Below, one piece after another: positions 1 through 13,796 of a stretch of DNA of 13,796 nucleotides. The position numbers and the translations under genes are program-made. Positions within the stretch are counted from its first letter, which is position 1, and each line of letters begins with the position of its first letter. Location: NCBI GenBank assembly GCA_009859145.1, contig VRVR01000005.1, positions 1 through 13,796 of the forward strand, written 5' to 3'. Under the pieces are notes generated by a model. It did not search any database. It was not told where the DNA came from and saw nothing but the letters and a program-made list of their open reading frames with translations. The stretch comes from Andalucia godoyi And28. Its lineage: Eukaryota; Protista; Jakobida.

Positions 1-89
1 CCGTCCAAACAATTTCATTTGCAACGGTAGGAGTGGAGAAGTGTTGCTTCGGGATTGACGGAGGCGTGAATGCCATTTCGCTTCCCGTT

Positions 90-3000
90 CTACGCCTTCT
101 CCGTAGACGTAGCCTTTTTAAAGAACCCCGCAAAATATGACGATTTTCTTGAAGAGAACGAGGAGGTCTGAATGGATGGCTTTCGATACAGAATAGACTG
201 CGAATGTGACTGAGGAGGCCGTGAAGCAGGCACACAAACACCCGCAATGCTTTCAGAAGCCTGACGCCGCAGTTGCTTGCGCACAACGTATCCCCTCCAA
301 AAAGCCTGAATTCGTAATGCCATTAGACGACGTCTGGCCAACAAGAGCGGCCCGAAGAGCTGCCGCTGAATAACGACCGCTGATATCCATCTTTGATGGA
401 AAAATGACCGGCGGCAACAATGGCGCCACCACCGTTGGACCTGCAGTGCGCTTGAGTGTCTGACACCAATGTTCCTTCTGCACACGATGGATTTCCACAC
501 AGATTGAATTCGTGTAATACGACTCACGTCGAATGCAATAGAAGGGCAATGGCGAACGAAGCGAGACAATACATGCGACGCCACGTTTGCCCTCGAGGAT
601 TCCTTGATTTGGCTCACAACCCTGCGCTGGACAATAACATGCAGGAACAGCTTGCAGAAGCGAGACAGTCGACAGAGGGTGAGTTTTCGTCGGACAAATT
701 GTTGAATGAGCAGTGCGGCTTCTCTGCTTCGATTATTGAAAAGCAGCTGCCTGTACATGCGGAACATCGACTGAAATCGTGATAAGCGCGCATGAAGTCT
801 TTCCAAATCTAATTGCGACAACCGAGACAAAATAACCTTTTGGACATCGGTTGCCTGATCCCATCTTTTCACAATGCTTCTCGTTGCGGATCCCTTCATG
901 ACTCTTTGGATGGTTCGAATATTCTTGTCTCGTCCCTCTTGCCGCACTCGGTGGCTACTGTTCCAAAAGAACTTCTGAAGACGGAGCGCAATAGCGATGA
1001 GACGCACAAACTGGCGACGCCGCACGTACATGCGCCAAGTAGCAGCAATCCGTGTAGATGCATTCACAGCTCGGCGGAATCTGCGTTTTTGGAAAAACAT
1101 CAGCAGCACACGACGGACGGTGGATTGCAGTTCATATTTGCGACGACGTCGAATGTCCGCGAAGCGCTTCCGCAGCCATTTTTGTACAACGCTTGCGGCA
1201 GCTTCGTGGGAATGCAGAATTTGACGGCACGCCATGCCTCGAACTATGGGCGACAGCAGGCTGCTGAGACGCTTCAATGCAAACATTCTTTTCAGCCCGT
1301 GCTGAAGCAGCATCGCGGATTGGATGAGACAAATGATCCGACAGTACCGCGAGAAGGACGGCACAAGAAATCTTCGGATAGAGGATTGCAACACAAGACG
1401 AGCGGCGAGTTCAGACGACATCTTTCGATGATGGCTTCGCATTTTGACTGCTACTCCAAGGGTCTTTGCGGCCACACTTCGACGAAGAGCACTCGAATGC
1501 GACAAGAAACTTTGAGCTTTAACGGCGATCGCAGACGATGCAATTTGGATTCGCCGAATCCGACGAAAAGCAAGTGTCTTCCTCCAGCTCAGTTGAATGA
1601 CAGCGGCACATCGATGACACCTCGCCATTTTCAGACGGACTATCTTCGATCGCCAGACAACTCCAATTTTTGCGATCAACCTGCGAAACCTTCGGAAGTT
1701 TCGAAGCATTAACCAGCCCCGGCCACATTGTTGCACTCTCTTCCACAAATACGACACCCGCGCTTGTCGGTGACGAAATTTCGAGCACGGCTGGATCTTG
1801 GATAGGCCGAGTTGAACTGCGGAGAACTGTCGGCGATCAAGAATTTGTCTCCAACGTCGCTGAAGGACGGCGGCAGCGGCAGAGCGCTTTATGGTCCGTA
1901 GCCAGTCCATTCGCTGACGAATCAAACGCTGGAGGATAAGAACGGACGAGCGAAGCCGTGTGAGCCGCTGACGACAAAGGAAGCCCCGGAACCATGTCTG
2001 CAGGCGAAGTGCAGATCGCATCATCATTTGGCGATGCAATCTCATTAAGAAGCCACGCGACCTTTGCTGAAGGATTATGGATGCGGCATGCATTCGACAA
2101 TTGAGAGTGATTTGGTGGACAAGCTTCGATTGGATATCCGCCAAACGGATCATGTTTCGCCGATTAAATGCGACTCGACAGTCTCTCCGACAGCAGTACA
2201 TGCTCTGTATTTGTCGAGCGGCTACCATCTGGCGATCACGCAGCCGACGTGCTGAAAATACCCGAAAAGCGCGCTGCAACGGCTCAGACCGCTCCCGCTC
2301 CCAACGGAGATGCAATCTCGCATATCTGCCACGACACACACGAGAAATCAGACGACTTGCTCGAAGTATTCGTTGTGCATAATGAGCATGTACCCATCGT
2401 CTGATCTCGCATTGAACCCTCTGGACACGAGCCACAAATTGCCGGTACGCACATTTAGCAAGACGTCCTCGCACATTCGTCTGAAACGCGATGCAGTTCT
2501 GCAGCAGTCGCAGATACATTCTGCTGCATAAAACTTTGCGAAACACAGACTGAATCTTTGTCGCAAGCTGCGATCGCAGGCCTGTCAAAAACATAGCACG
2601 GTGACTTCTGTACATTTGCTGAATGAGAATCGCAGACAATTTTTGGCTCCGCAGCCTCTGACGTTCCTGCATGCTCCTCCACAGCCGCTGGATGCGCACC
2701 GCAGCATGAAAAGATCGCAACAGTTTTCTGAACACGATTCTCTTACGAATGTGCGCTCGAAGAGTGTCAAATGCTCGGACAATCTTCTTCCAAAATCGTC
2801 GAGCAAGGAAGCGTGACACAATTCTTCGCAGAAGACGTTGGAACTGTGCCATGCGATTTCGCTTCAGTCTGTAGATCGCGCATCGAACGAATGACAATAC
2901 ATGCTGGGAGGCAGTGTATCTCAAACACTGTACACTCTGAGAAACCATTCTCATTCCCATCTTCTGCAGCAAGCAGGCAGACCTTTGCAACTTTCTGACA

Positions 3001-5660
3001 ACCACCTGCGAATGGTGGCGTCTCCAAGCTCGCTGCAAATGGATCGCCATTTGGGTATCCCTATGCAGGTGAAGACGAGAAATGTGTGTGCGGCACACTC
3101 GAATGAGCAGCTTCATGACTCGACGATTGTGGCGGAAGATTCGTAGACACCTCTTGCATCGAACCCATTGTTGGAGTTTGACGCATGCTGCGCGCTGTCT
3201 TTGGAACCGAAGCCAATGCACAGATCTTCTCCACAGCGATTGGGCCAAAATAACAGAAGCGCGTGTTTGCAAAAATTTCCTCCGAAGCAGACAGGACAGC
3301 CAGGTGTTTTGAATACGAGATGCACACAGATTCATCTGCTTCTTCTTGGATAGTGCAAGCAAATGTCTCCACCAGAATTGAATTCTGCGACAAGCTAAAT
3401 CCGTGGACTGCACACGGAGAACTAGCCGGAATCGTCGCTGTATTGACAGAACAATTCGTCGCAGACGCAAAAATGAGTTGCGAAACTTGCAGGATTTCCA
3501 ACGCAAAATAACGCGCTTCAGTAAATCGCGAATGCGCTGATGAGAGGAAATCAAGCGGTTAGCAGCAACAAACTGTTGAATTCTAGAGGCGGCTTCCAGA
3601 CGCTTAGACAACCCCACATTTGCTGAAAACCCGCGGTACACTCGTTGAATTGTCAGAGCTGCGCGTTGCTCTCGAAGCTGCCGTTGCTGCTGCAAGAAGC
3701 TCAATGTTCTTCTTGAAATTTTGATTTGGCTGCGTATAATCACATCTACTCTGCGTCGTGCTAAATGCCCCGTAGCAAGAGCGGAGAGACGAAGGAATCC
3801 AACTCTTGCCTCGTCCGCAAATTCCTTCGCACGAACCTGCCGAATACACGAGCATATCGTCGTGCACGCGTCTTTCATCTGCAGGTAGGAACGTCTGGAT
3901 AATCGCATGCGAACATGAGAGGAGACAAACGACGATAGACAACGCAAAAACAAAATGCGACGCAAGCATGCAGCTCTCCGGAACAAGGCTTGGATTCTAC
4001 AAACGAGACGCACGGTTTCTGCAAGAACTCGTCGGGTTATGCACGATCGGATGAAGCTGCACATCAGGGCAGCACTGGCACGCCTGCAATTTGCGAGACG
4101 TCGGTCACTCCATGATCGGCAGATGCGTTGAACATTTGTCGCAGACAACTTCAATGCGAATAAATACCGCTGCAGGGCTTTGCGACGAACGTAAGATCGG
4201 AGACAGCGTGCACCGAATTGTCTTTGGAAATTGGCGATGCGTTGCAAAACACCACGGAAAATGGCCTGCAGATATCGAACGAGACGGAGGTCGTAGGGAT
4301 ACTGCCAACGACTTCGCAGCCATTTTTGGATGTCTAATCCACTCTGGCGCTGATGGAGAAACCTCCTCCTAGTTTGGAACAATTTCCAGAGAGACTGAAT
4401 GACAACCGCAGCAGATCTCCGAACGCTTTCCTTCCAAATGAACAATGCCAAACGCACACGGTACCCACGAAAAACGCGTTGGATGAATACTGCTGATTCC
4501 AGTCGTCTCTTCTCGTCTCGATATTTTTGTACAAGCTGAACGGCAGACAGTCGCCTGTCATGATCCGCAGAGTACGACTTTGCCCGACTTAATTTTCGCA
4601 AAGTTGTCTTACCGTGACAAAATGGGTTTGCCATCGATCTTCTCACAAAATACCCACGGAGGTATCGTTGAATGCAGACGGCAGCGTCCCAACGTCTTCG
4701 ATAAACACTAGGACGAAGTGCGGAATCCGGTGCAAAATGGGGAATAAGGCGTCCAGAAGTCGACGACATGAGACGAAAAAGCGTTCCATCGCTCCCGGAT
4801 GATTTCGGAGGACTCGGCAGCTGCTTCCGCTTTGCTTTTGCACCGGACGATCGGCCCAGAGACTTTTGCGGAGTAACAATATTCTCCAATTTGAGAGGAG
4901 TCGCTGCCTTGCGTGGAAGCACGGGCTGCGTAGAGGCGTTTCCCTTCTTTTTGAACAGCGGAGGCTGAAGAGCGTTGGAGACAAACGAGTCCAATGCGTC
5001 CGCAGAAGAGAACCGCACATTAGGAGTGAATGCATAAGTCGGTGCACGAATAAGATTTTGCAGGTCCTGCAAACACTGGTGAAGCCGAGTGTTAAGACCC
5101 GCAGCTTCCAAGCAGGATGCAAGTCCCAACAAATACACATCCTGAGAAACCAGAGACGAGCCCAAGAAAATGCCAGACTCGAAAGACAGCAGCGCAGCAT
5201 CAAATTTCTTCTTTCGACGAAAATACATGGCCTGCAAATAGCATACAACTTTTCGAAAGGACTCCGCACTGGTCATCTCCTTGCAGTGCTTTCGAGACAG
5301 CACGAACGAAGCAGTTTCAAGACAAAATGCAACAGTCTTTTCGTCGGACAATGCAGAAGCTTTCGAGGTTCTTTCTGAGTTCAGGACGGAAGCGGAGCAC
5401 CAGCAAGCAAGTCGAACACAGTGTTCCGCAAGTGATAGGTCGTAGTTCCAGTCCAGAACCTTCCGGTACTTCATCAAGGCGGCGGAATAGTCTCCGGAAC
5501 TTTCAGAGCGACACCCATCCTCCTCAATCAACAGAAAGTCTACGGCAAGCTTTCTATCCGTACCTCTTGCAAGAAACAACGACGGCAGAGATCCGGACAG
5601 ATTGCTGACAATCCGACCTGGGGGCTTTTCCAACTCCAACGGAACAGGTAAGATCGCCAT
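90..5660 (-). CDS. Giant IQ-motif repeat (calmodulin/EF-hand-binding) protein, ASPM-like IQ array with TPR-like N-terminal region
   Basis: Uninterrupted ORF of about 1856 aa. The track start at 5666 is TTG; the first ATG is at 5660. Dozens of IQxxxRGxxxR-type motifs (IQRYLRGYFVRR, IQRVFRGYRVR, IQRVYRGFSAN, LQTWFRGFLCR, IQAFWRGYVVRK). No ASH, CH or C-terminal HEAT domain recognised, so the ASPM symbol is withheld. Confidence 0.85.
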   Translation of the reverse strand: MAILPVPLELEKPPGRIVSNLSGSLPSLFLARGTDRKLAVDFLLIEEDGCRSESSGDYSAALMKYRKVLDWNYDLSLAEHCVRLACWCSASVLNSERTSKASALSDEKTVAFCLETASFVLSRKHCKEMTSAESFRKVVCYLQAMYFRRKKKFDAALLSFESGIFLGSSLVSQDVYLLGLASCLEAAGLNTRLHQCLQDLQNLIRAPTYAFTPNVRFSSADALDSFVSNALQPPLFKKKGNASTQPVLPRKAATPLKLENIVTPQKSLGRSSGAKAKRKQLPSPPKSSGSDGTLFRLMSSTSGRLIPHFAPDSALRPSVYRRRWDAAVCIQRYLRGYFVRRSMANPFCHGKTTLRKLSRAKSYSADHDRRLSAVQLVQKYRDEKRRLESAVFIQRVFRGYRVRLALFIWKESVRRSAAVVIQSLWKLFQTRRRFLHQRQSGLDIQKWLRSRWQYPYDLRLVRYLQAIFRGVLQRIANFQRQFGARCLRSYVRRKALQRYLFALKLSATNVQRICRSWSDRRLANCRRASAALMCSFIRSCITRRVLAETVRLVCRIQALFRRAACLRRILFLRCLSSFVSSHVRMRLSRRSYLQMKDACTTICSCIRQVRAKEFADEARVGFLRLSALATGHLARRRVDVIIRSQIKISRRTLSFLQQQRQLREQRAALTIQRVYRGFSANVGLSKRLEAASRIQQFVAANRLISSHQRIRDLLKRVILRWKSCKFRNSFLRLRRIVLSIQRRFRLVLRVQSTDLACRRIQFWWRHLLALSKKKQMNLCASRIQNTWLSCLLRRKFLQTRASVILAQSLWRRSVHWLRFQRQRAACVKLQQWVRCKRCLRIFRHNRRVMKLLIRVCRTHISRLHLHRDTQMAIHLQRAWRRHHSQVVVRKLQRSACLLQKMGMRMVSQSVQCLRYTASQHVLSFVRCAIYRLKRNRMAQFQRLLRRIVSRFLARRFWKKIVRAFDTLRAHIRKRIVFRKLLRSFHAAVRIQRLWRSMQERQRLRSQKLSAILIQQMYRSHRAMFLTGLRSQLATKIQSVFRKVLCSRMYLRLLQNCIAFQTNVRGRLAKCAYRQFVARVQRVQCEIRRWVHAHYAQRILRASRLISRVCRGRYARLHLRWERERSEPLQRAFRVFSARRLRDRQMVAARQIQSMYCCRRDCRVAFNRRNMIRLADIQSKLVHQITLNCRMHAASIILQQRSRGFLMRLHRQMMMRSALRLQTWFRGFLCRQRLTRLRSSVLILQRLIRQRMDWLRTIKRSAAAAVLQRRWRQILDRRQFSAVQLGLSKIQPCSKFRHRQARVSYLWKRVQQCGRGWLMLRNFRRFRRLIAKIGVVWRSKIVRLKMARCHRCAAVIQLSWRKTLAFRRIRRIQIASSAIAVKAQSFLSHSSALRRSVAAKTLGVAVKMRSHHRKMSSELAARLVLQSSIRRFLVPSFSRYCRIICLIQSAMLLQHGLKRMFALKRLSSLLSPIVRGMACRQILHSHEAAASVVQKWLRKRFADIRRRRKYELQSTVRRVLLMFFQKRRFRRAVNASTRIAATWRMYVRRRQFVRLIAIALRLQKFFWNSSHRVRQEGRDKNIRTIQRVMKGSATRSIVKRWDQATDVQKVILSRLSQLDLERLHARLSRFQSMFRMYRQLLFNNRSREAALLIQQFVRRKLTLCRLSRFCKLFLHVIVQRRVVSQIKESSRANVASHVLSRFVRHCPSIAFDVSRITRIQSVWKSIVCRRNIGVRHSSALQVQRWWRHCCRRSFFHQRWISAVVIQRQLFGPLLLARRRLMALRIQAFWRGYVVRKQLRRQASESIAGVCVPASRPPQSHSQSILYRKPSIQTSSFSSRKSSYFAGFFKKATSTEKA
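270..4685 (-). repeat. Protein-level tandem array of degenerate IQ motifs, often about 23 aa apart
   Basis: Successive motifs IQSLWK, IQKWLR, LQAIFR, LRSYVR, VQRICR, MCSFIR, IQALFR start 23, 20, 23, 23, 23 and 23 residues apart. The DNA is not visibly repetitive, implying an old array. Confidence 0.85.
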
Positions 5661-6119
5661 CAACAACCAATCATGAACGCTGTGAAATCTATGGTGGGGG
5701 AAAAAACCGTAAAGCCTTCCTGAACCCTACGAGAAGCGACTTGCTTGCGAAATCTTACTTATTGTGTTTGGTTTGCACAATGACGATTGGGACTTCTGAT
5801 GTGTGTATATGGTGTAGACCACTGGTGGATGGGTGCAATCAAGAGGCGGAATGGTGCTTTTCTTCTCAATCCCCTTCGTTTTCTTGTTGTCAAACCTTTC
5901 ACCCATCCTCCAAAAAAAAAAAAAAAATATGATGCTGAAAAAAATCAAAAAGGAAACCGCAAAAGCATAGCATCAAATGAGTCGTTCAGCATCAAGCGCC
6001 AAGAAAAGACAGGGGGGAAGTGGGGGAAGTGGGAAAAAGCAAAAGGGTCCGCTGTGTCGGAGTGATCATCGCCAGCTCCGTGTTTTTTGTCTTTGTGCTG
6101 CTGTTGTTGACTGTTTCCG
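5661..6119. promoter_or_regulatory. Divergent (head-to-head) intergenic region between the IQ-array gene and STK19
   Basis: Both flanking ORFs start here, pointing outward. A-rich on the left part and T/GT-rich next to the STK19 ATG. Confidence 0.55.
5912..5927 (+). repeat. Poly(A)16 tract
   Basis: 16 consecutive A in the intergenic spacer. Confidence 0.95.
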
Positions 6120-6947
6120 ATGATTTCTGGCTGTGCAACGCAGGCGTCTTACAAGAGATCATACAGCTTGACTGAACCGAATGGAGCGTCTTCACTGGCA
6201 GATTCGATAGTGTCACGACCTTCGAAGCGAACGCGGCGCGAGCCGGCTATAGATCCCACTCCGTTGCTGCTGGAGCTTGATGATGTTGATGAAGCACTGG
6301 CGAGCACTTCCGAAGTGTCACTCGTCGCGGACCACATCCTAAGCACTTTTCCGGCCTCCAAGTTCCCAGCTGTGATTCCGTTTTTCCCTGTGCACTTCAT
6401 TTATAACCATTTTGCGGATCGATCCGCTGCCGATGCAGAATTGCACCAGCTCTCGCAGTTGCAGTACGTCATCACGCGTCTTCCGTGCCTGCCCTGCGAA
6501 GACGTAGTGTTTCCGTTGGAATGTTGGAAGCAGCAGTTGGCTGCAAACCAACACGTTCCTGCAATGCTCAAAGAGGATGTTATGGCGTCGATCCGTAGCG
6601 GTCAGGTCGAGCGTCTTCATCTCGCAGACGTTGCAAAACGGCGAATCTTGCTCTCGCAAGGGTTTTATTCTGTTCCTGCGGAGAAGGAACTTGGAGTTGC
6701 AGACGAGTTCTTGCGTATTTCCATTCCAAATGCTGTGTCGGTAGCGACCGACTTGAGAAGGGCACGTAGGGCGTTGCTGGGGATTTTCAAGGGGAGAGCG
6801 GTGCCAGAAGTCCCCGTAAGCCACATTGTCGAAAGAATTTACTCCAAGCTTCCGCCTATTTGGGCTGTGTGGGATGCTATTGGGAAAAAGGTCTGTGAAG
6901 TTATCCACGCTCCTTCTGGGAAGCTGCTCGTTTGCGACAATCCATGA
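6120..6947 (+). CDS. STK19: STK19-family protein (tandem winged-helix DNA-repair factor, historically annotated as Ser/Thr kinase 19)
   Basis: 275 aa, ATG to TGA. Motif order matches STK19: FP..FP..IP....H.IY..FADRSAADAELHQL (human FP..LPPIVLRSQVYSLVPDRTVADRQLKEL), ISIPNA (LAVPGAG), RRALLGIFK (RQAVLSMVRK), WDAIGKKVCEVIHAPSGKLL (HDLIGAQLVDCISTTSGTLL). Confidence 0.8.
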   Translation: MISGCATQASYKRSYSLTEPNGASSLADSIVSRPSKRTRREPAIDPTPLLLELDDVDEALASTSEVSLVADHILSTFPASKFPAVIPFFPVHFIYNHFADRSAADAELHQLSQLQYVITRLPCLPCEDVVFPLECWKQQLAANQHVPAMLKEDVMASIRSGQVERLHLADVAKRRILLSQGFYSVPAEKELGVADEFLRISIPNAVSVATDLRRARRALLGIFKGRAVPEVPVSHIVERIYSKLPPIWAVWDAIGKKVCEVIHAPSGKLLVCDNP

Positions 6948-7142
6948 CTATGTCAAGGTACTCTGCACGCGTGTGGTTTTGTGTTGACGCTTTGCGGACA
7001 TTGCTCGTTGTGTTCCTTGTGCAGCAACGGCAGGAGTAGGAGTGATATCGGATTGAACAAGTAGTTGTTTTTCTTTTTCAATTATCATCACCACAGTACA
7101 AGGGTTAAAAAGAATATATAAAAGCCATAGAGAGTGGGCCTG

Positions 7143-7985
7143 TCAAATCATGTTCGAGGCATTCGAGGTCTTGGATCTGGAACCGGTAAGTGGTACTGTT
7201 TCAGAAAGCTCTTTGTTCTTCTTACCTGGAGTACTCGCAGATCTGGAGATAAATCCCTGCTCCGAAACTTCTCTTCCTACCGCCCACGTTGCCGCGGTAA
7301 ATTGGACATTGGCTAAGAACCAAAATACGATTGCCAACAAGGCCGCAGCGAGCGAATCGGAAGAATTCCAATCGTAGTGAGCGCCATCCACTGCCAGCGC
7401 CGCCATGGGAGCGTAGAACGGAGCAATTCCCTTGAAATCGCTGACCGACGGTGCCGATGCAGAGTACGAGAACACTCCTGCGGCAAACAAGATCATGGAC
7501 ACCCACGCAAAAAAGACCCAAACGGCCTTGAGTGCGAACGGCGGAAGAGGCACCGAGGTGTACGCATCGTCTGTAGACATGCGCAAAAGGGAAAAGATGA
7601 TCACAGGGCACACCAGCAAGATGGACAGCGCAGTTAAGACATAGAATGGCCGAGGTGATGATTCAATCAGCTTGTGGCAAAAGTCGGAAATCGCGGAATG
7701 CGACGACCCCAAGTTGGAGCAGGAGCGGACGAATGACGTCGAATAGACGAAAGGCGGAGTTGCACCGGGAACGATTGTTGCGCCGATTACTTTATATGAT
7801 GACACCGAAACATCGACAACAGACATGAGAGTTGTCGATTGTGCCGTGCAGCTGTAGACAAACCACGATCCGCCGTTCAGGGCGAGAATCGCAAGAATAA
7901 TCGCGCATGCGTACGTCATGAACGTCGACGCAAATGTGAACCGCTGCGCCTTGATGCAGCAAACCTTCACTATGTTTCCCCTCAT
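7143..7985 (-). CDS. Four-transmembrane protein, claudin/PMP22/Sur7-like topology, function unknown
   Basis: The track start at 8006 is TTG; the first ATG is at 7985 (280 aa). Four hydrophobic segments (FMTYACAIILAILAL, FYVLTALSILLVCPVIIFSLL, AVWVFFAWVSMILFAAGVF, LAAALLAIVFWFLANV), W just after TM1, a large Cys-containing first loop and a polar C-tail. The claudin GLW signature is absent. Confidence 0.7.
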   Translation of the reverse strand: MRGNIVKVCCIKAQRFTFASTFMTYACAIILAILALNGGSWFVYSCTAQSTTLMSVVDVSVSSYKVIGATIVPGATPPFVYSTSFVRSCSNLGSSHSAISDFCHKLIESSPRPFYVLTALSILLVCPVIIFSLLRMSTDDAYTSVPLPPFALKAVWVFFAWVSMILFAAGVFSYSASAPSVSDFKGIAPFYAPMAALAVDGAHYDWNSSDSLAAALLAIVFWFLANVQFTAATWAVGREVSEQGFISRSASTPGKKNKELSETVPLTGSRSKTSNASNMI

Positions 7986-8307
7986 CACAACGGGCTGCAG
8001 CGGCAAGTGGGACGGAGGGAGGAATATAACAGTATGCGCTGAGATGAGGCATAGTAAATATTATAATAATAAAAAAACCGCTGAGATGGACCACGGAAAA
8101 GCCAAGCCCAAAAAAAAGACTGGGTGTCGCTAGGAATTCCCGATCGGAGAAAAAAGGGTTCCAGCTTGATGCTTCATCCGCTCTCTGTTCCCCCCCCCCT
8201 CTTCTCGCCCCCAACACTGCACTCTGTTTCTTTCTCCTTTTGACTCTTCTCTTTTCTGATTTCAGCGAAACCTTTTTCATTCGACCGTACAACTACCGTT
8301 CAAGAGA
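7986..8307. promoter_or_regulatory. Divergent intergenic region between the 4-TM gene and TXNDC17
   Basis: Head-to-head ORFs. A-rich left half, pyrimidine-rich right half including C10 at 8190-8199. Confidence 0.5.
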
Positions 8308-8733
8308 ATGCACACTGTCAACGTTACGGATGCTCTCCGAGCCAAAGAAGAGGCGTATGCCGTGCTTGCAGCAAACCCATCTGCAAAGGTCCTGCTGTAC
8401 TTTTATGGAGGCCCCGATGCGGAAACTGGTGCGATCTCGTGGTGTGGCGACTGTGTGAAGACCAAGGCGCCTGTGGAGAACGCATTGGCATCTCTTTCTG
8501 AAGAGCAGTCCGCCAACCTGTACGTTTTGCACGTGTCTCTTGAGCGCCCGCTGTACAGAGACCGCGCTGCGTTTACGCCGCGTCGTGACGAGACCATTCA
8601 TCTTGAGGCCATCCCGAACCTCATCCATGTTGCATCCACAGAGCCACGCGATGCAGAGGAGAGGCTTATTGAAGGAGAGCTTGCGGACCAGGAGAAGGTG
8701 CGCCAGTTCCTCATCAAGGTCGTTTCGGAATAA
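8308..8733 (+). CDS. TXNDC17: Thioredoxin-domain protein 17 / TRP14 (DUF953) homologue
   Basis: 141 aa. LLYFYGGPDAETGAISWCGDCV matches the family pattern (F.G..D..G.SWCPDC), followed by V...R..YRD....R and the cis-Pro segment IPNLI. Confidence 0.88.
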   Translation: MHTVNVTDALRAKEEAYAVLAANPSAKVLLYFYGGPDAETGAISWCGDCVKTKAPVENALASLSEEQSANLYVLHVSLERPLYRDRAAFTPRRDETIHLEAIPNLIHVASTEPRDAEERLIEGELADQEKVRQFLIKVVSE

Positions 8734-8765
8734 AGGCCTGCAAGGGATGGTGATGCGACGTCGTC

Positions 8766-8791
8766 TTTTTTTTTTTTTTTTGTGTGTGTGT
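8766..8791 (+). repeat. Poly(T)16 followed by (GT)5 microsatellite
   Basis: Read directly from the sequence, just downstream of the TXNDC17 stop. Confidence 0.9.
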
Positions 8792-9163
8792 ACGTTCTTC
8801 AGTTGCTCTTTTGTGCTCTCTTGTAAAATTGACTGGATTTTCCCCACGCGCAAAACCCGTTGTTCTTGGACATTGCTACCCTTCTGCGCCAAGCTCGTGC
8901 GTCTGCAGGTTCATACAGTCCGTCGTACAGTCACACAGGAAGAGTGGGTGAGGAAAAAACAGCTGCAGTAAAAACTTGAAGTTTCAATCGACCACCCAAA
9001 AACCGACCAATTTGTGTGAGCCCTTTCTTTCCTTTTTCGCAGCGTTTGTCCAATCGCCTTGTTGTTTTTTGTTTTGTTTTGTTTCGTCTTTTTCCTCCTC
9101 CTCGGTTTGCCACATTTTGTTGACGAGGTTCGAGCTCACAGACATTCGCGCTTTTCCTAACAA

Positions 9164-9778
9164 ATGGCATCCTCTTCGACCTCCAAGCACATCCGCTGGG
9201 ATGAACACAATCTGGACGTCAATGAATCGGAAAAGGTGCCGCGGATGAAGATCGACGAGCCGAAGACTCCGTATGTCGTGTATGACACAAGCACAGATGA
9301 AGAAGTCCAAAAGGCTCTCGGCGAGTCTTCTGTTCCCGATGCACCGAAAGGACAAACAATTATTTCGCCTTCGGACTCGTCGGTCCTGATGATTTCCCCG
9401 CATGGCCACGCAGAACGCATGGAGGTCGATGTTGGTGAAAAGGTCGATCTCGATGCGGTGAGCTCAAAGCTAATGAGCTCAGATTCAAAACGAAGGAGAA
9501 GGCGCAGAGTCCGCATTTCGCCTCACAGTGGGGAAGAGAACGATGGCGGCCATGGTGAATGGGATACCACGTCATCGGAGGGCGATCTTGACGCAGATCG
9601 TATGGACGACGTCGACGGAGAGCCAGACAGCGAGATGGACCATGGCGCGTTTGTTGAAAAGCGCAAGAAACATTACAACGAGTTTGAAATGCTCAAACAG
9701 TGGAAACAGCAGCATGAACAGGACGACGACGAGGATGCCCTAACTCCAGCCTCCGCCCCAACTGCATCTGCATTTTGA
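9164..9778 (+). CDS. PPP1R2: Protein phosphatase 1 inhibitor-2 (IPP-2/Glc8 family)
   Basis: 204 aa, acidic, start context caaATGG. All three family motifs in order: KHIRWDEHNL (RVxF-like), MKIDEPKTPY (phospho-Thr site) and FVEKRKKHYNEF (catalytic-site helix). Confidence 0.93.
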   Translation: MASSSTSKHIRWDEHNLDVNESEKVPRMKIDEPKTPYVVYDTSTDEEVQKALGESSVPDAPKGQTIISPSDSSVLMISPHGHAERMEVDVGEKVDLDAVSSKLMSSDSKRRRRRRVRISPHSGEENDGGHGEWDTTSSEGDLDADRMDDVDGEPDSEMDHGAFVEKRKKHYNEFEMLKQWKQQHEQDDDEDALTPASAPTASAF

Positions 9779-9883
9779 GCAACATGATCTACGTGCACCG
9801 CAACGCCTTTCAGAGATTAAAGTACTTTCGGTACCAATCGTATATTGCCCCTTTTTTTCCTTTTTGCAAATTGCACACCCCTT

Positions 9884-9896
9884 CCCCCCCCCCCCC
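9884..9896 (+). repeat. Poly(C)13 tract
   Basis: 13 consecutive C about 105 nt downstream of the IPP-2 stop. Confidence 0.9.
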
Positions 9897-10132
9897 GCCG
9901 ACAACAGCGTGCATCAACTTTTCTGCTGTTATACTTTCTGTCTGGCAGCAATCGATCGCCAAAACATGAATCATGATTGATCACCGGGCTAAGCTGTCAT
10001 TGAGGGCTTGATTATGAAAAACACAAAACAGAAAATCATAGGAAAAAACAGGAAAAAGTTAAGAATGACAGAATTCTAGACTGGACTACGGTAAGAAAAT
10101 CGTATTGTTTTGATGTTCAATGTTTGACATAC

Positions 10133-10150
10133 AAAACGGTCAGCCGTTTT
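10133..10150. promoter_or_regulatory. Perfect inverted repeat AAAACGG-TCAG-CCGTTTT (dyad of Myb-type AACGG cores)
   Basis: The 7-bp arms are seen directly, about 180 nt upstream of the XRRA1-like ATG. A regulatory role is inferred only. Confidence 0.35.
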
Positions 10151-10329
10151 CGTCTGGTCTTTCTTCTGTTTGATCTCCGGAGCTGTGTTTCTTCTTTAAT
10201 TATTTATTGCCGTAATAATTTGATTTTTTTTTAAATTATATTTTCAATTCTGGGGGGATATTCGCTTTGCATTTTCCTTTTCGTTTTCTTCGTCGTCGTC
10301 GCCGTCTCCGTCGTGGTTGTTGTTGACGT

Positions 10330-11799
10330 ATGCTGAGGCCGGATTATGTCCCCCGGCCGGGCCCGGTTCCATCACGGACGCTTGGTGCGCGGCAACAGTT
10401 TGATTTCAGAGTTCTTCGAAGCAGGACGCCGACGGATCCGATCCCTCGACTACCAGTCCGGAAGTCTGCGCCGACGGTTCGGTGTTTGAATGCACAGACA
10501 GGGTCGCTGGTGAACCATCCTTCGCCGTACCGTTCACGCTCCCGTATTTTGGCATTGAATCCAAGACAGGCGGCGATGCATGCCCACCAAGAAAAAAAGA
10601 TTGATCTTGACGGGTTCTTGCTGTTGGAAGCTTCTCATGCAGAAGATCCAGAGGATGCAACAGAGGCAGTGCTTAATAATCGAAAACTTCACGGAGCCAT
10701 CACGGAAGATTTGTCATATTTTACAAAACTCCGGTACCTGGATGTTGGGGAAAATAACATGTCGTTCTCGGCGTTTGCGCCGCTTGCTGCTCTCGAGGAG
10801 CTGCACATGCACTGCAATGCTCTGCGCATCATAGATCCTTCTCCGGGCTCTTTTCAAAATCTCCAAACGCTGAATGTATCTTATAACCTTTTAACCTCCA
10901 CATGCTTGGAGAGACTAACTTGCTTGCCAGCTCTTCGGTTTTTGGACCTTTCTTGCAATGATCTGCGTGACGAAGATTTTCCGCCAGATCTGTCTGGCCT
11001 GCGATTGCTCGAATGCCTTGCTCTTGAAAAGAACAATCTCTCCGCACATGAAGAGGTTTTCTCGTCTCTTGCGTCGATTCCGTGCCTTCGCGAACTGAAT
11101 GTGAATTATAACCAGTTTAAACAGGTTCCGCGTCTGCAGTTCCCTTTCGAGCGGTTGGAAGTGCTATCGATCGCCAACAATCAAATATCGACATACGAGA
11201 GCCTGCTATCGTGCCTGGACTGTCCATCGATGAAAACAGTGATTGCGCATGGGAATCCAATCGACGTGTTCTCTGCAGACAAGCAAGCGTTGGTGGAAGA
11301 CTTTGCGGACAACGGGATGTTGATCGTCTTTGAGTCAACAGACCTGCTCCCGAAAAAGCCGCCTGTTGGAGTATTCTACCAGGCAAACACAACCAAGCTT
11401 GCGCGCGTGCAGACGACCTTGCCATTTATCAAGCGACGAAACCCGCGAAGAAAGCAAGAGAAGGCACAAGTGCTGGAGATTCTGGATGATGATCAGATGG
11501 ATTACGACAACCAAACTGAAGATGGAGACGAGTACGATCACACCAGTGGTGGGGCCGCAGACAGCAGCACGTTCTTCATTACAGGTGGAGGAAACGAAGG
11601 ACACATCAAGGACGAAACTGGATCCGTGTTATCGATGTCTTCCGACGAAGCCGAAGCCAGTCTTCCGACCCAGGCGTTCAACAAAAAATCTACGGCCCAT
11701 CAGCGAGCGAAAGTTACGCAGCCAAAATCCCATGGACTGCAATCCGCATTGCATGCGCTAAAGTATGCGCTGGAACATCCACCCACAGGATATGATTGA
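10330..11799 (+). CDS. XRRA1: Leucine-rich repeat protein, XRRA1-like
   Basis: 489 aa. LRRs such as LRYLDVGENNM, LEELHMHCNAL, LQTLNVSYNLL, LRFLDLSCNDL, LECLALEKNNL, LRELNVNYNQF and LEVLSIANNQI. LDGFLLL, ENNMSFSAFAPLAALEEL and FSSLASIPCLRELNVNYNQFKQVP parallel XRRA1 (LDQAFLL, ENLLPLEAFHTFPALKEL, FASLAGLRRLKKLSLDENRIIRIP). Acidic disordered C-tail. Confidence 0.75.
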   Translation: MLRPDYVPRPGPVPSRTLGARQQFDFRVLRSRTPTDPIPRLPVRKSAPTVRCLNAQTGSLVNHPSPYRSRSRILALNPRQAAMHAHQEKKIDLDGFLLLEASHAEDPEDATEAVLNNRKLHGAITEDLSYFTKLRYLDVGENNMSFSAFAPLAALEELHMHCNALRIIDPSPGSFQNLQTLNVSYNLLTSTCLERLTCLPALRFLDLSCNDLRDEDFPPDLSGLRLLECLALEKNNLSAHEEVFSSLASIPCLRELNVNYNQFKQVPRLQFPFERLEVLSIANNQISTYESLLSCLDCPSMKTVIAHGNPIDVFSADKQALVEDFADNGMLIVFESTDLLPKKPPVGVFYQANTTKLARVQTTLPFIKRRNPRRKQEKAQVLEILDDDQMDYDNQTEDGDEYDHTSGGAADSSTFFITGGGNEGHIKDETGSVLSMSSDEAEASLPTQAFNKKSTAHQRAKVTQPKSHGLQSALHALKYALEHPPTGYD

Positions 11800-11862
11800 A
11801 AATTACTCGTAGCGGCATATGATGACAATGCCAATGTAAATAAGAAGGGGAGGAGAGAAAAG

Positions 11863-13137
11863 TTATTGAAGAGATACGGCATCGGTGAGCTGAATCAGTG
11901 GCAAGATACCGACAGCAGCAATGAACACAACCAGCAGCCCCACCAGCACGGTGGTTGCAGGTTGAATGATTCCCAGCATTGCCTTCACTCGAGCCACGTA
12001 CTGTCGGGTAACAGCCTGGGAAACGTATCGCAACCCTTCCTGCACAACAGAGTGCTTCCTTGACACAAAACACGCTTGCAAATACGCAATCTCGTACGGA
12101 GAAAACACGTGCTTCTGCGTCAGAAGATACCCGAATACTTCTTCAGGAGTGCCTCCACTCCTTGCCTTTGCGGCCATGGATTCGAGCATCTGTTGCAGCA
12201 CCACGTTTCCGGTCAAATTCACACACGACAGAATCAGCTTTGAAGAAACGTGGTCCTTGTCCAGAAGCGAGAGCATGTGCAGCACAGTGGCTTTGTCCCG
12301 CAGCAGCGCAAGATGCGAGAGTGGTGTATGAAGACGAAGATAATGCAACTTCAACCACGTCCTGAACGGCAGGTAGTGGCTCGATAGTGCTTGAGGAACC
12401 AGGTACAGAAGAGCAAGCCAGTAGTAATCCACTCGGTGGATCAGAGTGTGAATCAGGCGGAGAAACGGAGGTACGGCCAAGTTCAGTGCCTCGAACTGCT
12501 GGATGTTTCGAGGAAGGATGGTCGTGACAAGAACCACGATCGCCGCAATCGCCAAAAACATCATTAAAGCAGGATATGCAAGAGAAGAATAGAGCTCATT
12601 TCGAAGCCTGATGTCCTGGGCAAACCGCTGTGCTGCAAAAGACAGTACTTTATCGAAATCACCGATCGCTCGGCCAAGCACCAGGCAAGAGTAATACCAC
12701 GCGGGGAGGAACACCTTCACTTTTGCAAGCATTGTTATGAAGGTTGCGTAATCGGCGCCACCCAGTGCAGATCGCGGGATCTTCAACTGTGACAAGAACG
12801 GGAGCAAATCAGAGGTCGCGCTGGAGGATCGCATCATGACGTCAAAGATGGACACTGTATTGGCGGTTGCCGGAGCCGAATTGACAAGAAACAAAATATT
12901 GTTGAAAGCCTGCAGTGATTCATCCGAGAGAGCCCCTTTACCATGGACCGATCTGACTATTTTCCAGAGAAACGACGATGACGACCGACTGTCGGCTATT
13001 TGGTCATGATCGATGCTGCTGCTGGCACCTGTCATGGACGGTGCCTGTCCCACAGACGGCACGTTCAGGTGTCGAACCAACCGATAGACACGCCTCAGAT
13101 GGACAGATCCGCGTGACGCCATAGAATGGATTGTCAT
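11863..13137 (-). CDS. gspF: GspF/PilC (T2SSF family) inner-membrane platform protein homologue with putative mitochondrial presequence
   Basis: The track start at 13161 is TTG; ATGs are at 13137 and 13122. Bacterial GspF layout: domain 1 FLPAWYYSCLVLGRAIGDFDKVL..RLRNELYSSLAYP, TM1 ending ILP..F..L...VP, YYW plus TM2, domain 2 GNVVLQQML..ARSGGT..VFSP, then IIQP plus TM3 ending LPLIQL. Confidence 0.88.
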   Translation of the reverse strand: MTIHSMASRGSVHLRRVYRLVRHLNVPSVGQAPSMTGASSSIDHDQIADSRSSSSFLWKIVRSVHGKGALSDESLQAFNNILFLVNSAPATANTVSIFDVMMRSSSATSDLLPFLSQLKIPRSALGGADYATFITMLAKVKVFLPAWYYSCLVLGRAIGDFDKVLSFAAQRFAQDIRLRNELYSSLAYPALMMFLAIAAIVVLVTTILPRNIQQFEALNLAVPPFLRLIHTLIHRVDYYWLALLYLVPQALSSHYLPFRTWLKLHYLRLHTPLSHLALLRDKATVLHMLSLLDKDHVSSKLILSCVNLTGNVVLQQMLESMAAKARSGGTPEEVFGYLLTQKHVFSPYEIAYLQACFVSRKHSVVQEGLRYVSQAVTRQYVARVKAMLGIIQPATTVLVGLLVVFIAAVGILPLIQLTDAVSLQ

Positions 13138-13392
13138 GTATCCCGCGGTCGCTTGATGCAATTCAAATTACGTGGACAATGGTGTGTGTTTCCACACCTT
13201 CAATCTGACTCCGTCTTCTCGGGCGTGTTTGGACAGGATGCCGATCCCCTTACCGTTGAATAATGACACGACATTGTCATATATACGGGAGGAAGTATAC
13301 ATAAACAGACACGGTCAATACTGACCGACACTAGCACGTTTTGTTTCACAGGGAATTCGTGTTTACGCACGCTCGGCCAAAATTCAGTCTGG

Positions 13393-13420
13393 TTTTTGGT
13401 TTCACTTTTTTGGTTTCACT
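13393..13420 (+). repeat. Perfect 14-bp tandem duplication (TTTTTGGTTTCACT x2)
   Basis: 13393-13406 is identical to 13407-13420 and is followed by TTTT. Confidence 0.92.
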
Positions 13421-13452
13421 TTTTATTCAAATGTGGGCGTAAGTGCGCTGGG

Positions 13453-13796
13453 ATGACGCATTCGCCTACGCCTACGCCGCTCGATACAGGGCCTCCTAAG
13501 TCCCGGAGACCTACTAAGAGACCACGTGTCACTACGCCTGCCGTCTCTTCCTACTCTCGTATCTCCAGCTGCATCAATCGCGCTATAACTGAGGACACGA
13601 AAGCGCCTGCTGCTAGGGCCGTCAGAATCAAAATGCACCCTTCTCAGGAACAACGTGTCACGCTGAGAAAGTGGCTCACCGATTGATCGAGATTGGGAAC
13701 GGAGCGCGGAACATTTATCTGAAGAACGCAGAGAGGCGTGTTGGAGCCTATCCCTTTCCCGGCAACGGGATGCAAGATTGAATATGCATGTCTACT
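13453..13796 (+). pseudogene. Possible degenerate TnpB/Fanzor (IS200/IS605/IS607 OrfB-like) N-terminal fragment
   Basis: ATG ORF 13453-13686 (77 aa) ends RAVRIKMHPSQEQRVTLRKWL, resembling the HTH_OrfB_IS605 pattern (RLYPTxEQxxxLxxW). After an in-frame TGA the same frame reads LGTERGTF, resembling (F)GxxRxxYN. A second stop follows, and no RuvC domain is visible in the window. Confidence 0.45.

Follow-up and report, generated by a model that had tools for sequence, protein, structure and literature searches.

The locus

The first 13,796 nucleotides of contig VRVR01000005.1 (positions 1-13796, termed here the window) carry a gene for a GspF-like protein, a homologue of the platform protein of the bacterial type II secretion system (T2SS). 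The contig is 508,847 bp long and belongs to assembly GCA_009859145.1; the project VRVR00000000 represents the nuclear genome of the jakobid Andalucia godoyi (PMC7050145). The open reading frame (ORF) is on the reverse strand at 11863-13137, and window coordinates are also those of the GspF record. It starts with the ATG at 13137, ends with the TAA at 11863-11865, is intact and encodes 424 amino acids. An in-frame stop is found 11 codons 5′ of the ATG, and a mechanical ORF listing begins 8 codons earlier than the ATG, at a TTG at 13161.

The exact 424-amino-acid protein is encoded once in the public sequence collection, on VRVR01000005.1. The ORF product corresponds to KAF0853007.1 / ANDGO_01917, with equal length and identity over the printed parts of the published sequences. 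ANDGO_01917 was curated as "T2SS F-like protein (GspF)" in Table S1 of Gray et al. 2020 (PMC7050145). The same sequence is listed as "GspF / Andalucia godoyi KAF0853007.1", with three transmembrane (TM) domains predicted by TMHMM, in Supplementary Data 1 of the description of the mitochondrial T2SS (miT2SS) by Horváthová et al. 2021 (PMC8134430). Supplementary Fig. 4I of that paper aligns the protein with bacterial GspFs, and A. godoyi is among the species reported there to possess the complete core set of four genes. The gene was thus already in the literature, together with its annotation, the prediction of its targeting and its alignment. A first-pass annotation of the window, made from the sequence alone, had suggested a new record if the host lay outside a list of four lineages that included the jakobids; since the host is a jakobid and the gene was published in 2020 and 2021, that suggestion falls away.

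The features of the gene are as follows.

11863..13137, reverse strand: complete intronless coding sequence, read as miT2SS GspF, 424 amino acids plus TAA (ORF, Pfam T2SSF, record identity)
13048..13137, reverse strand: presequence region, amino acids 1-30, putative matrix-targeting signal (5 Arg, no acidic residue, predicted helix at amino acids 10-24)
12973..13065, reverse strand: Ser/Gly-rich linker, amino acids 25-55, predicted disordered, located where bacteria have the N-domain (predicted local distance difference test score, pLDDT, below 50)
12595..12942, reverse strand: first cytoplasmic-type helical domain, amino acids 66-181, with a matrix-side location inferred (alignment, Foldseek, motif census)
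12652-12675, reverse strand: GRAIGDFD at the position of bacterial GExxGxL(D/E) in the first domain (alignment)
12499..12594, reverse strand: TM segment 1, amino acids 182-213, with the invariant Tyr188-Pro189 at 12571-12576 (hydropathy peak 2.83)
12370..12429, reverse strand: TM segment 2, about amino acids 237-256, weak (hydropathy peak 0.96; AlphaFold2 helices 224-236 and 240-250)
11983..12369, reverse strand: second cytoplasmic-type helical domain, amino acids 257-385, net charge +8 (alignments, charge count, internal repeat)
12052-12072, reverse strand: CFVSRKH plus a 3-residue insertion replacing bacterial GE(E/Q)SG in the second domain (alignments)
11887..11982, reverse strand: TM segment 3, amino acids 386-417, with Gln392-Pro393 (11959-11964) at the Glu-Pro position (hydropathy peak 3.03)
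11800..11862, no strand: 63-bp spacer between the convergent GspF and leucine-rich-repeat protein genes (coordinates)

Family membership and fold

The translated sequence is recognized by the Pfam T2SSF model (PF00482) with 66 bits (gathering cut-off 25.2; E 3.9e-18), in two matched stretches. Among NCBIfam models the best is GspF (TIGR02120, 68 bits, residues 141-421); the ComGB and PilC models come next at 45 bits, and a second PilC model scores 22 bits. Three motifs are found in frame: GRAIG at 12661-12675 (amino acids 155-159), YP at 12571-12576 (amino acids 188-189) and QP at 11959-11964 (amino acids 392-393). Aligned with bacterial GspF, they coincide with the GExxG, YP and EP columns. 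The T2SSF assignment of the first-pass annotation, its expectation of two T2SSF matches and its placement of all three motifs are thus borne out.

The two-domain, three-TM layout claimed in the same annotation also holds. The N- and C-terminal halves align weakly with each other (BLASTP E 0.004), with YP over QP. Amino acids 182-213 and 384-423 are strongly hydrophobic (Kyte-Doolittle peaks 2.8 and 3.0), and the order first cytoplasmic domain, TM1, TM2, second cytoplasmic domain, TM3 is found by hydropathy and by the order of helices in an AlphaFold2 model, in agreement with the three published TMHMM segments. The model, built from a 25-sequence alignment, displays the expected all-helical layout, with a mean pLDDT of 75 and a predicted template modelling score (pTM) of 0.65. 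The top Foldseek matches in the PDB are PilC (3jc8, probability 1.0), the cytoplasmic domains of EpsF and OutF and the PilC N-terminal domain, with target TM-scores of 0.6-0.72; for the first domain compared with the EpsF, OutF and PilC cytoplasmic domains, target TM-scores are again 0.6-0.72, at probabilities of 0.89-0.99. A full-length experimental GspF structure is absent among the Foldseek PDB matches. The sole PDB sequence match of the A. godoyi protein is PilC of 3jc8 (E 8.6e-5).

The bacterial proteins PulF of Klebsiella, EpsF of Vibrio and OutF of Dickeya share with A. godoyi GspF the two T2SSF repeats, in each of which a helical domain precedes a TM segment, together with a middle TM segment, the invariant Tyr-Pro of TM1 and the proline of TM3, residues that line the channel of the PulF trimer. 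The differences are several. A. godoyi GspF does not have the bacterial N-domain, and the N-terminal ∼60 residues of bacterial GspF align to gaps or to an unrelated extension. Bacterial matches carry PF28597 besides T2SSF, whereas eukaryote-type proteins do not, and a typical bacterial GspF scores 211 bits against Pfam T2SSF compared with 46-66 bits for the eukaryote-type proteins. Other residues stand in the place of the three hallmark glutamates, and the protein is encoded in the nucleus and carries a putative presequence. A gsp operon is lacking, as are the partners GspC, L, M and O.

PilC of Myxococcus and Thermus has the same superfamily and topology and, as noted, gives the top structural match and the only sequence match in the PDB, but the NCBIfam PilC models stay below the GspF model on the A. 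godoyi protein. The authors of the miT2SS description point out that some eukaryotic Gsp proteins are not unambiguously assignable to the T2SS as opposed to other machines of the type IV pilus (T4P) superfamily.

Relatives and origin

A word-indexed search of 5.8 billion proteins yields 17 eukaryote-type relatives at 49-72% identity (48-72% when alignments are also considered). Those with names are Malawimonas jakobiformis GspF (54-58%) and proteins of Naegleria fowleri, N. lovaniensis, Willaertia magna and Acrasis kona; the rest are metagenome proteins. After a drop, the next matches in that search are bacterial GspFs, with identities of 22-30% and E-values no better than 1e-11. Overall, the identity of the A. 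godoyi protein to bacterial GspF is 15-30%. An exhaustive HMMER search of 1.84 billion representatives gives 2410 matches at E<=0.001, with eukaryote-type clusters at 252-489 bits plus fragments, and among these representatives there is no bacterial-type protein above 80 bits or above 31% identity.

A neighbour-joining tree was built from the 18 eukaryote-type proteins together with 45 bacterial representatives. In it the eukaryote-type proteins form a monophyletic group with 100/100 bootstrap support, and the stem of this group measures 1.12 substitutions per site. A. godoyi GspF falls in this eukaryote clade and not inside a recent bacterial clade. The identity to eukaryote-type GspFs and the position in the tree uphold the reading of the gene as a miT2SS GspF, as the first-pass annotation had proposed. 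Published maximum-likelihood analyses are likewise without an identifiable bacterial donor.

The miT2SS GspFs of Naegleria gruberi and N. fowleri, Gefionella okellyi, Malawimonas jakobiformis and Reclinomonas americana are orthologues, with 48-59% identity over ∼85-95% of the length. A. godoyi GspF shares the signatures of this clade: G(K/R) in place of GE, CF..SGKH plus an insertion in the second repeat, a non-acidic residue before the TM3 proline, and an N-terminal extension instead of the bacterial N-domain. It differs from the others in some respects. Residue 392 is Gln, compared with Asn in most other eukaryote-type members, and residue 360 is Arg, where all others have Gly. The putative presequence is short (∼55 amino acids before the conserved core) in comparison with the extensions of 150-250 amino acids in Naegleria, and the gene is intronless, in contrast to those for miT2SS GspF of other eukaryotes.

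The closest relative is an environmental protein, P0002, at 72% identity, found on a 4.4-kb metagenome contig of the Joint Genome Institute (3300042934, Ga0456364_0021673). The two proteins pair in 79/100 bootstraps; they are the most divergent full-length members and form the basal pair when the tree is rooted on bacteria. The source of P0002 is probably an uncultured Andalucia-like jakobid. The P0002 gene as called is truncated, and its open frame continues 5′ to give a full-length intronless protein with an Arg-rich N-terminus. On that contig the GspF relative is convergent with a gene for a Rad50-like coiled-coil ATPase (160-1575 on the forward strand and 1601-4318 on the reverse strand). 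Shared synteny with A. godoyi was considered and rejected, the neighbour there being the Rad50-like ATPase and not the leucine-rich-repeat protein.

The mean corrected distance is 0.43 within the eukaryote-type clade, compared with 1.69 among the bacterial representatives. Jakobids, malawimonads and heteroloboseans split near the root of the eukaryotes. The tightness of the clade points either to very strong constraint or to a spread younger than inheritance from the last eukaryotic common ancestor implies. The miT2SS is a remnant of a bacterial T2SS in mitochondria, probably inherited from that ancestor.

Partner genes in the genome

Other components of the system are encoded in the same assembly, as the first-pass annotation had led one to look for. 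A query with A. godoyi GspE retrieves the NCBI entry "mitochondrial T2SS E-like protein (GspE) [Andalucia godoyi]", with its gene at VRVR01000038.1 118420-119846. The gene spans 1427 bp for 348 codons, which is consistent with three introns; introns of 154, 117 and 109 nt have been reported (Gray et al. 2020, PMC7050145). A shorter second GspE isoform of 263 amino acids is present at NCBI. GspD, Gcp6, GspDN1 and Gcp12 are also found as A. godoyi NCBI proteins on assembly contigs, and GspG is known from literature tables (KAF0853042.1).

The nearest known partner gene is that for GspDN1 (KAF0853016.1), on the reverse strand of VRVR01000005.1 at ∼162.5 kb, ∼149 kb from GspF. The Gcp12 gene (KAF0853021.1) is on the forward strand of the same contig at ∼249.6-250.4 kb, ∼237 kb from GspF. 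Gcp6, GspD and GspE are on other contigs, and none of Gcp6, Gcp13, GspDN1 and Gcp12 is detected by tblastn in contig positions 1-23137.

Six A. godoyi miT2SS-linked accessions fall within 43 numbers (KAF0853000, 3007, 3013, 3016, 3021 and 3042). A cluster of miT2SS genes near GspF, which such close accessions might indicate, was rejected on the actual positions, these being ∼149 and ∼237 kb away or on other contigs. The locus table for the 21-kb GspF locus shows GspF as the only called gene, which suggests that a curated subset was annotated and that accession numbers do not represent gene-by-gene positions. By accession order, Gcp13 (KAF0853013.1) and GspG (KAF0853042.1) could also be on VRVR01000005.1. 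Three of ∼28 linked genes on a contig with ∼2.5% of the genome represent a mild excess at most, that is, shared linkage and not a cluster. The text of PMC8134430 does not mention synteny, adjacency or a contig in common.

Predicted targeting and proposed role

The first 30 amino acids contain 5 Arg and no acidic residue, and display a helical hydrophobic moment of up to 0.63, with an amphipathic helix predicted at amino acids 10-24 in the AlphaFold2 model. Published predictor scores for A. godoyi GspF are a mitochondrial targeting peptide score of 0.947 with TargetP 1.1, 0.976 with MitoProt and a positive call of 0.847 with MitoFates (PMC8134430). With TargetP 2.0 dissenting, these predictors are 3 to 1 for a mitochondrial presequence. 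The net charge of the second cytoplasmic-type domain is +8, that of the loop +1 and that of the tail -1, which is consistent with the positive-inside rule. In related species, N. gruberi GspF is found in the mitochondrial and not the peroxisomal proteome, and G. okellyi GspF self-interacts and binds GspG1 in the bacterial adenylate cyclase two-hybrid assay (BACTH) (PMC8134430).

The following role may be proposed. GspF would be made in the cytosol, imported by means of its Arg-rich N-terminal presequence and inserted in the mitochondrial inner membrane by three TM helices, with both helical domains on the matrix side, the topological equivalent of the bacterial cytoplasm. By analogy with PulF, it would oligomerize via TM1 and TM3 around the Tyr-Pro and X-Pro pairs. 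The platform so formed may couple the matrix ATPase GspE, probably via GspEN2A and GspEN2B, to the building of a GspG pseudopilus within the intermembrane space, and the pseudopilus would drive a substrate across the outer membrane by way of the truncated GspD pore.

Loss of conserved glutamates

A residue census compared 135 bacterial representatives of 340-470 amino acids with the 18 eukaryote-type proteins. The glutamate of the GE motif in repeat 1 is present in 131/135 bacterial representatives and in 0/18 eukaryote-type proteins, which have Lys or Arg. In repeat 2 the GE glutamate is found in 128/135 bacterial representatives and again in 0/18 of the eukaryote-type proteins (Phe, Leu or Ile); here the preceding Gly is changed to Cys and a 3-residue insertion follows the lost Glu. 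The GExxG pattern is accordingly absent from A. godoyi GspF, where GRAIG is found in the first repeat and CFVSR in the second. The third glutamate, before the TM3 proline, is conserved in 115/135 bacterial representatives and in none of the 18 eukaryote-type proteins, where Asn, Gln, Ser, Gly or Thr is found (Q392 in A. godoyi). Gln is present at this position in 4/135 bacterial representatives. Three other residues of TM1 and TM3 have been retained: Y188 in 134/135 bacterial and 18/18 eukaryote-type proteins, and P189 and P393 each in 135/135 and 18/18.

These positions can be placed on a bacterial model. In the PulF trimer, Y168 and E370, each beside an invariant proline, form the constriction of a channel, and the single substitution E370C is tolerated (PMC10790770). 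Tyr188-Pro189 of A. godoyi GspF corresponds to Y168-P169 of PulF, and Gln392-Pro393 to E370-P371. As E370C is tolerated, an acidic residue before the TM3 proline is typical but not strictly required. The lack of an acidic residue at the constriction speaks against conservation of a cation site, but the tolerance of E370C and the presence of Gln in a few bacteria temper that argument.

A change may also be predicted on the side of the ATPase. The PulF-PulE model has the cytoplasmic domains of PulF each docked on the N2 domain of PulE. Eukaryotic GspE consists of the C1E and C2E domains only, and the N2-like parts are the separate proteins GspEN2A and GspEN2B (Horváthová et al. 2021). A docking surface that has been remodelled may reasonably be proposed from the missing GE motifs; with the missing N-domain also taken into account, both the surface that docks the ATPase and any ion-binding site at the constriction have probably been remodelled.

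Genomic surroundings

The immediate neighbour of GspF, at 10330-11799, encodes a leucine-rich-repeat protein. The 63-bp spacer between these two genes falls inside the range of 44-691 nt reported for intergenic spacers of A. godoyi (PMC7050145), in keeping with a compact genome. A gene for protein phosphatase inhibitor IPP-2 (PF04979, 66 bits) is at 9164-9778, and one for a TXD17-like thioredoxin is at 8308-8733. The purely eukaryotic neighbourhood described in the first-pass annotation was thus correct for IPP-2; the gene that it called XRRA1-like stands only as a leucine-rich-repeat protein, and its STK19, presumably the 275-amino-acid ORF at 6120-6947 on the forward strand, finds no support, as that ORF has no Pfam match at E<=0.1 and no PDB sequence match.

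On the reverse strand, 7143-8006 encodes 287 amino acids with several hydrophobic stretches; this is likely a multi-pass membrane protein, has no Pfam family and by tblastn matches none of Gcp6, Gcp13, GspDN1 and Gcp12. Also on the reverse strand is a 1858-amino-acid ORF (90-5666), rich in Arg, Gln and Leu, with at least seven calmodulin-binding motifs of the IQ type (Pfam IQ, 27 bits) as its sole domains. This ORF begins ∼90 bases from the contig end and looks like an IQ array of the ASPM/abnormal-spindle type. The first 300 bases of the contig show no telomere-like repeat.

The main window ORFs were scanned against Pfam, and apart from GspF none has a T2SS or T4P family match. GspF is therefore locally a lone gene, with no gspE/pilB or pilin gene alongside, as first described.

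The end of the window abuts a 119-base gap of N (contig 13797-13915) flanked by a (GA)n run. A 96-amino-acid ORF on the forward strand (13396-13686) is found between GspF and this gap and may be cut by it; a resemblance of its C-terminal stretch to the start of TnpB/Fanzor-type proteins was rejected for want of a Pfam match at E<=1. Genes for V-ATPase subunit d and for a kinesin are found beyond the gap. The intergenic region between the kinesin gene and the next gene contains a long (TG/CA)n microsatellite (L001 6617-7270, 7033-7716), which gives rise to spurious "CVCVCV" and "THTHTH" ORFs.

The GC content is flat across the window (0.44-0.53). The GC content at third codon positions (GC3) of GspF is 0.58, and its relative synonymous codon usage correlates with that of the pooled neighbours at r 0.66, compared with 0.26-0.78 for the neighbours among themselves. 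The gene models of the curated A. godoyi set were checked against RNA-seq (PMC7050145). A chimeric contig is thus countered, indirectly, by composition, by codon usage, by the eukaryotic genes on both sides and by the published, RNA-seq-checked model.

Weighing the assignment

The best explanation of the locus taken as a whole is a single-copy intronless nuclear gene for GspF of the A. godoyi miT2SS, with the platform role proposed above; its probability is put at roughly 0.85. Several points weigh against it. Within the family assignment, the 68 bits with TIGR02120 do not reach the equivalog cut-off of 424 bits, all Foldseek E-values against the PDB are above 0.001, and the middle TM segment (∼amino acids 237-256) is weakly hydrophobic, with a peak of 0.96. 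Three glutamates kept by 85-97% of the bacterial representatives are absent and, given this loss and the weak TM2, the bacterial mechanism may not carry over unchanged. With respect to location, TargetP 2.0 calls A. godoyi GspF "OTHER" at 0.57, and A. godoyi GspE does not have a predicted presequence (TargetP "other" 0.87, MitoProt 0.19; PMC8134430), which is hard to square with a matrix location. The evidence of localization and interaction is from the orthologues of N. gruberi and G. okellyi and not from the A. godoyi protein itself, and GspF was the one subunit that could not be expressed in yeast (PMC8134430). Finally, eukaryotes are not known to have homologues of GspC, L, M and O (PMC8134430); with these missing and no known substrate, secretion is a hypothesis even in the best-studied species. 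No paper using the term miT2SS was found that settles the substrate or the purpose.

The alternative that survives best accepts a genuine GspF of the miT2SS clade but has the GspE/F/G/D remnant building a pilus-like filament that does not secrete protein. The jobs proposed for such a filament are membrane contact, scaffolding in the intermembrane space, nucleic-acid or lipid handling and a peroxisome link, and the loss of glutamates would then reflect the change of job. The missing GspC, L, M and O and minor pseudopilins, the truncated and split GspD, the lack of an identified substrate, the fractionation of several co-occurring Gcp proteins with peroxisomes and the loss of the GE, GE and EP glutamates in every member of the eukaryote clade are all in keeping with it. 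G. okellyi GspG, however, oligomerizes and binds GspF as in bacteria (PMC8134430), and the strong conservation of the clade (0.43 compared with 1.69) indicates a constrained machine, without saying which one. A filament of this kind is considered improbable.

A second alternative, that GspF is targeted to the endoplasmic reticulum (ER), plasma membrane or peroxisomes and not to the mitochondrial inner membrane, is very unlikely. The TargetP 2.0 call is compatible with it, as are a split WoLF PSORT result (mitochondrial 12, plasma membrane 6, ER 5; PMC8134430) and the mislocalization of G. okellyi GspD in T. brucei (PMC8134430). Against these are the high TargetP 1.1 and MitoProt scores and the positive MitoFates call, the Arg-rich N-terminus devoid of acidic residues and the presence of N. 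gruberi GspF in the mitochondrial, not the peroxisomal, proteome.

Bacterial contamination or a recent isolated horizontal transfer unrelated to the mitochondrial system, to which an otherwise bacterial family, an intronless gene and a distance of 660 bp to an assembly gap might point, is ruled out by the gap in the exhaustive search below the eukaryote-type proteins, the 100/100 eukaryote clade, the eukaryotic genes on both sides in a 509-kb contig, GC3 and codon usage that match the neighbours, and the presence in the same genome of GspD, GspG, accessory genes and, on another contig, a GspE gene with three introns, while ∼88% of the 864 curated A. godoyi nuclear genes for candidate mitochondrial proteins are intronless anyway (PMC7050145).

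Possible implications for the mitochondrial platform

With GspF of A. godoyi retained as a component of the miT2SS, the clade-wide loss of the glutamates represents one modest addition to what has been published, and one that is testable against the PulF ion-channel model. A census of these residues was not found in the text of the miT2SS papers, where the GspF alignment is an image. The glutamate reading is later than the 2021 description, since the PulF channel model dates from late 2023.

The disappearance of these glutamates from all sampled eukaryote-type GspFs allows the tentative suggestion, held to be rather less probable than its opposite, that the miT2SS platform may work differently from the bacterial platform. 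If this is true, there would possibly be no binding of cations or protons at the constriction, and assembly would not be driven by an ion-motive force. The docking surface, in turn, may have been rebuilt for the separate GspEN2A and GspEN2B proteins in place of an N2 domain fused to the ATPase.

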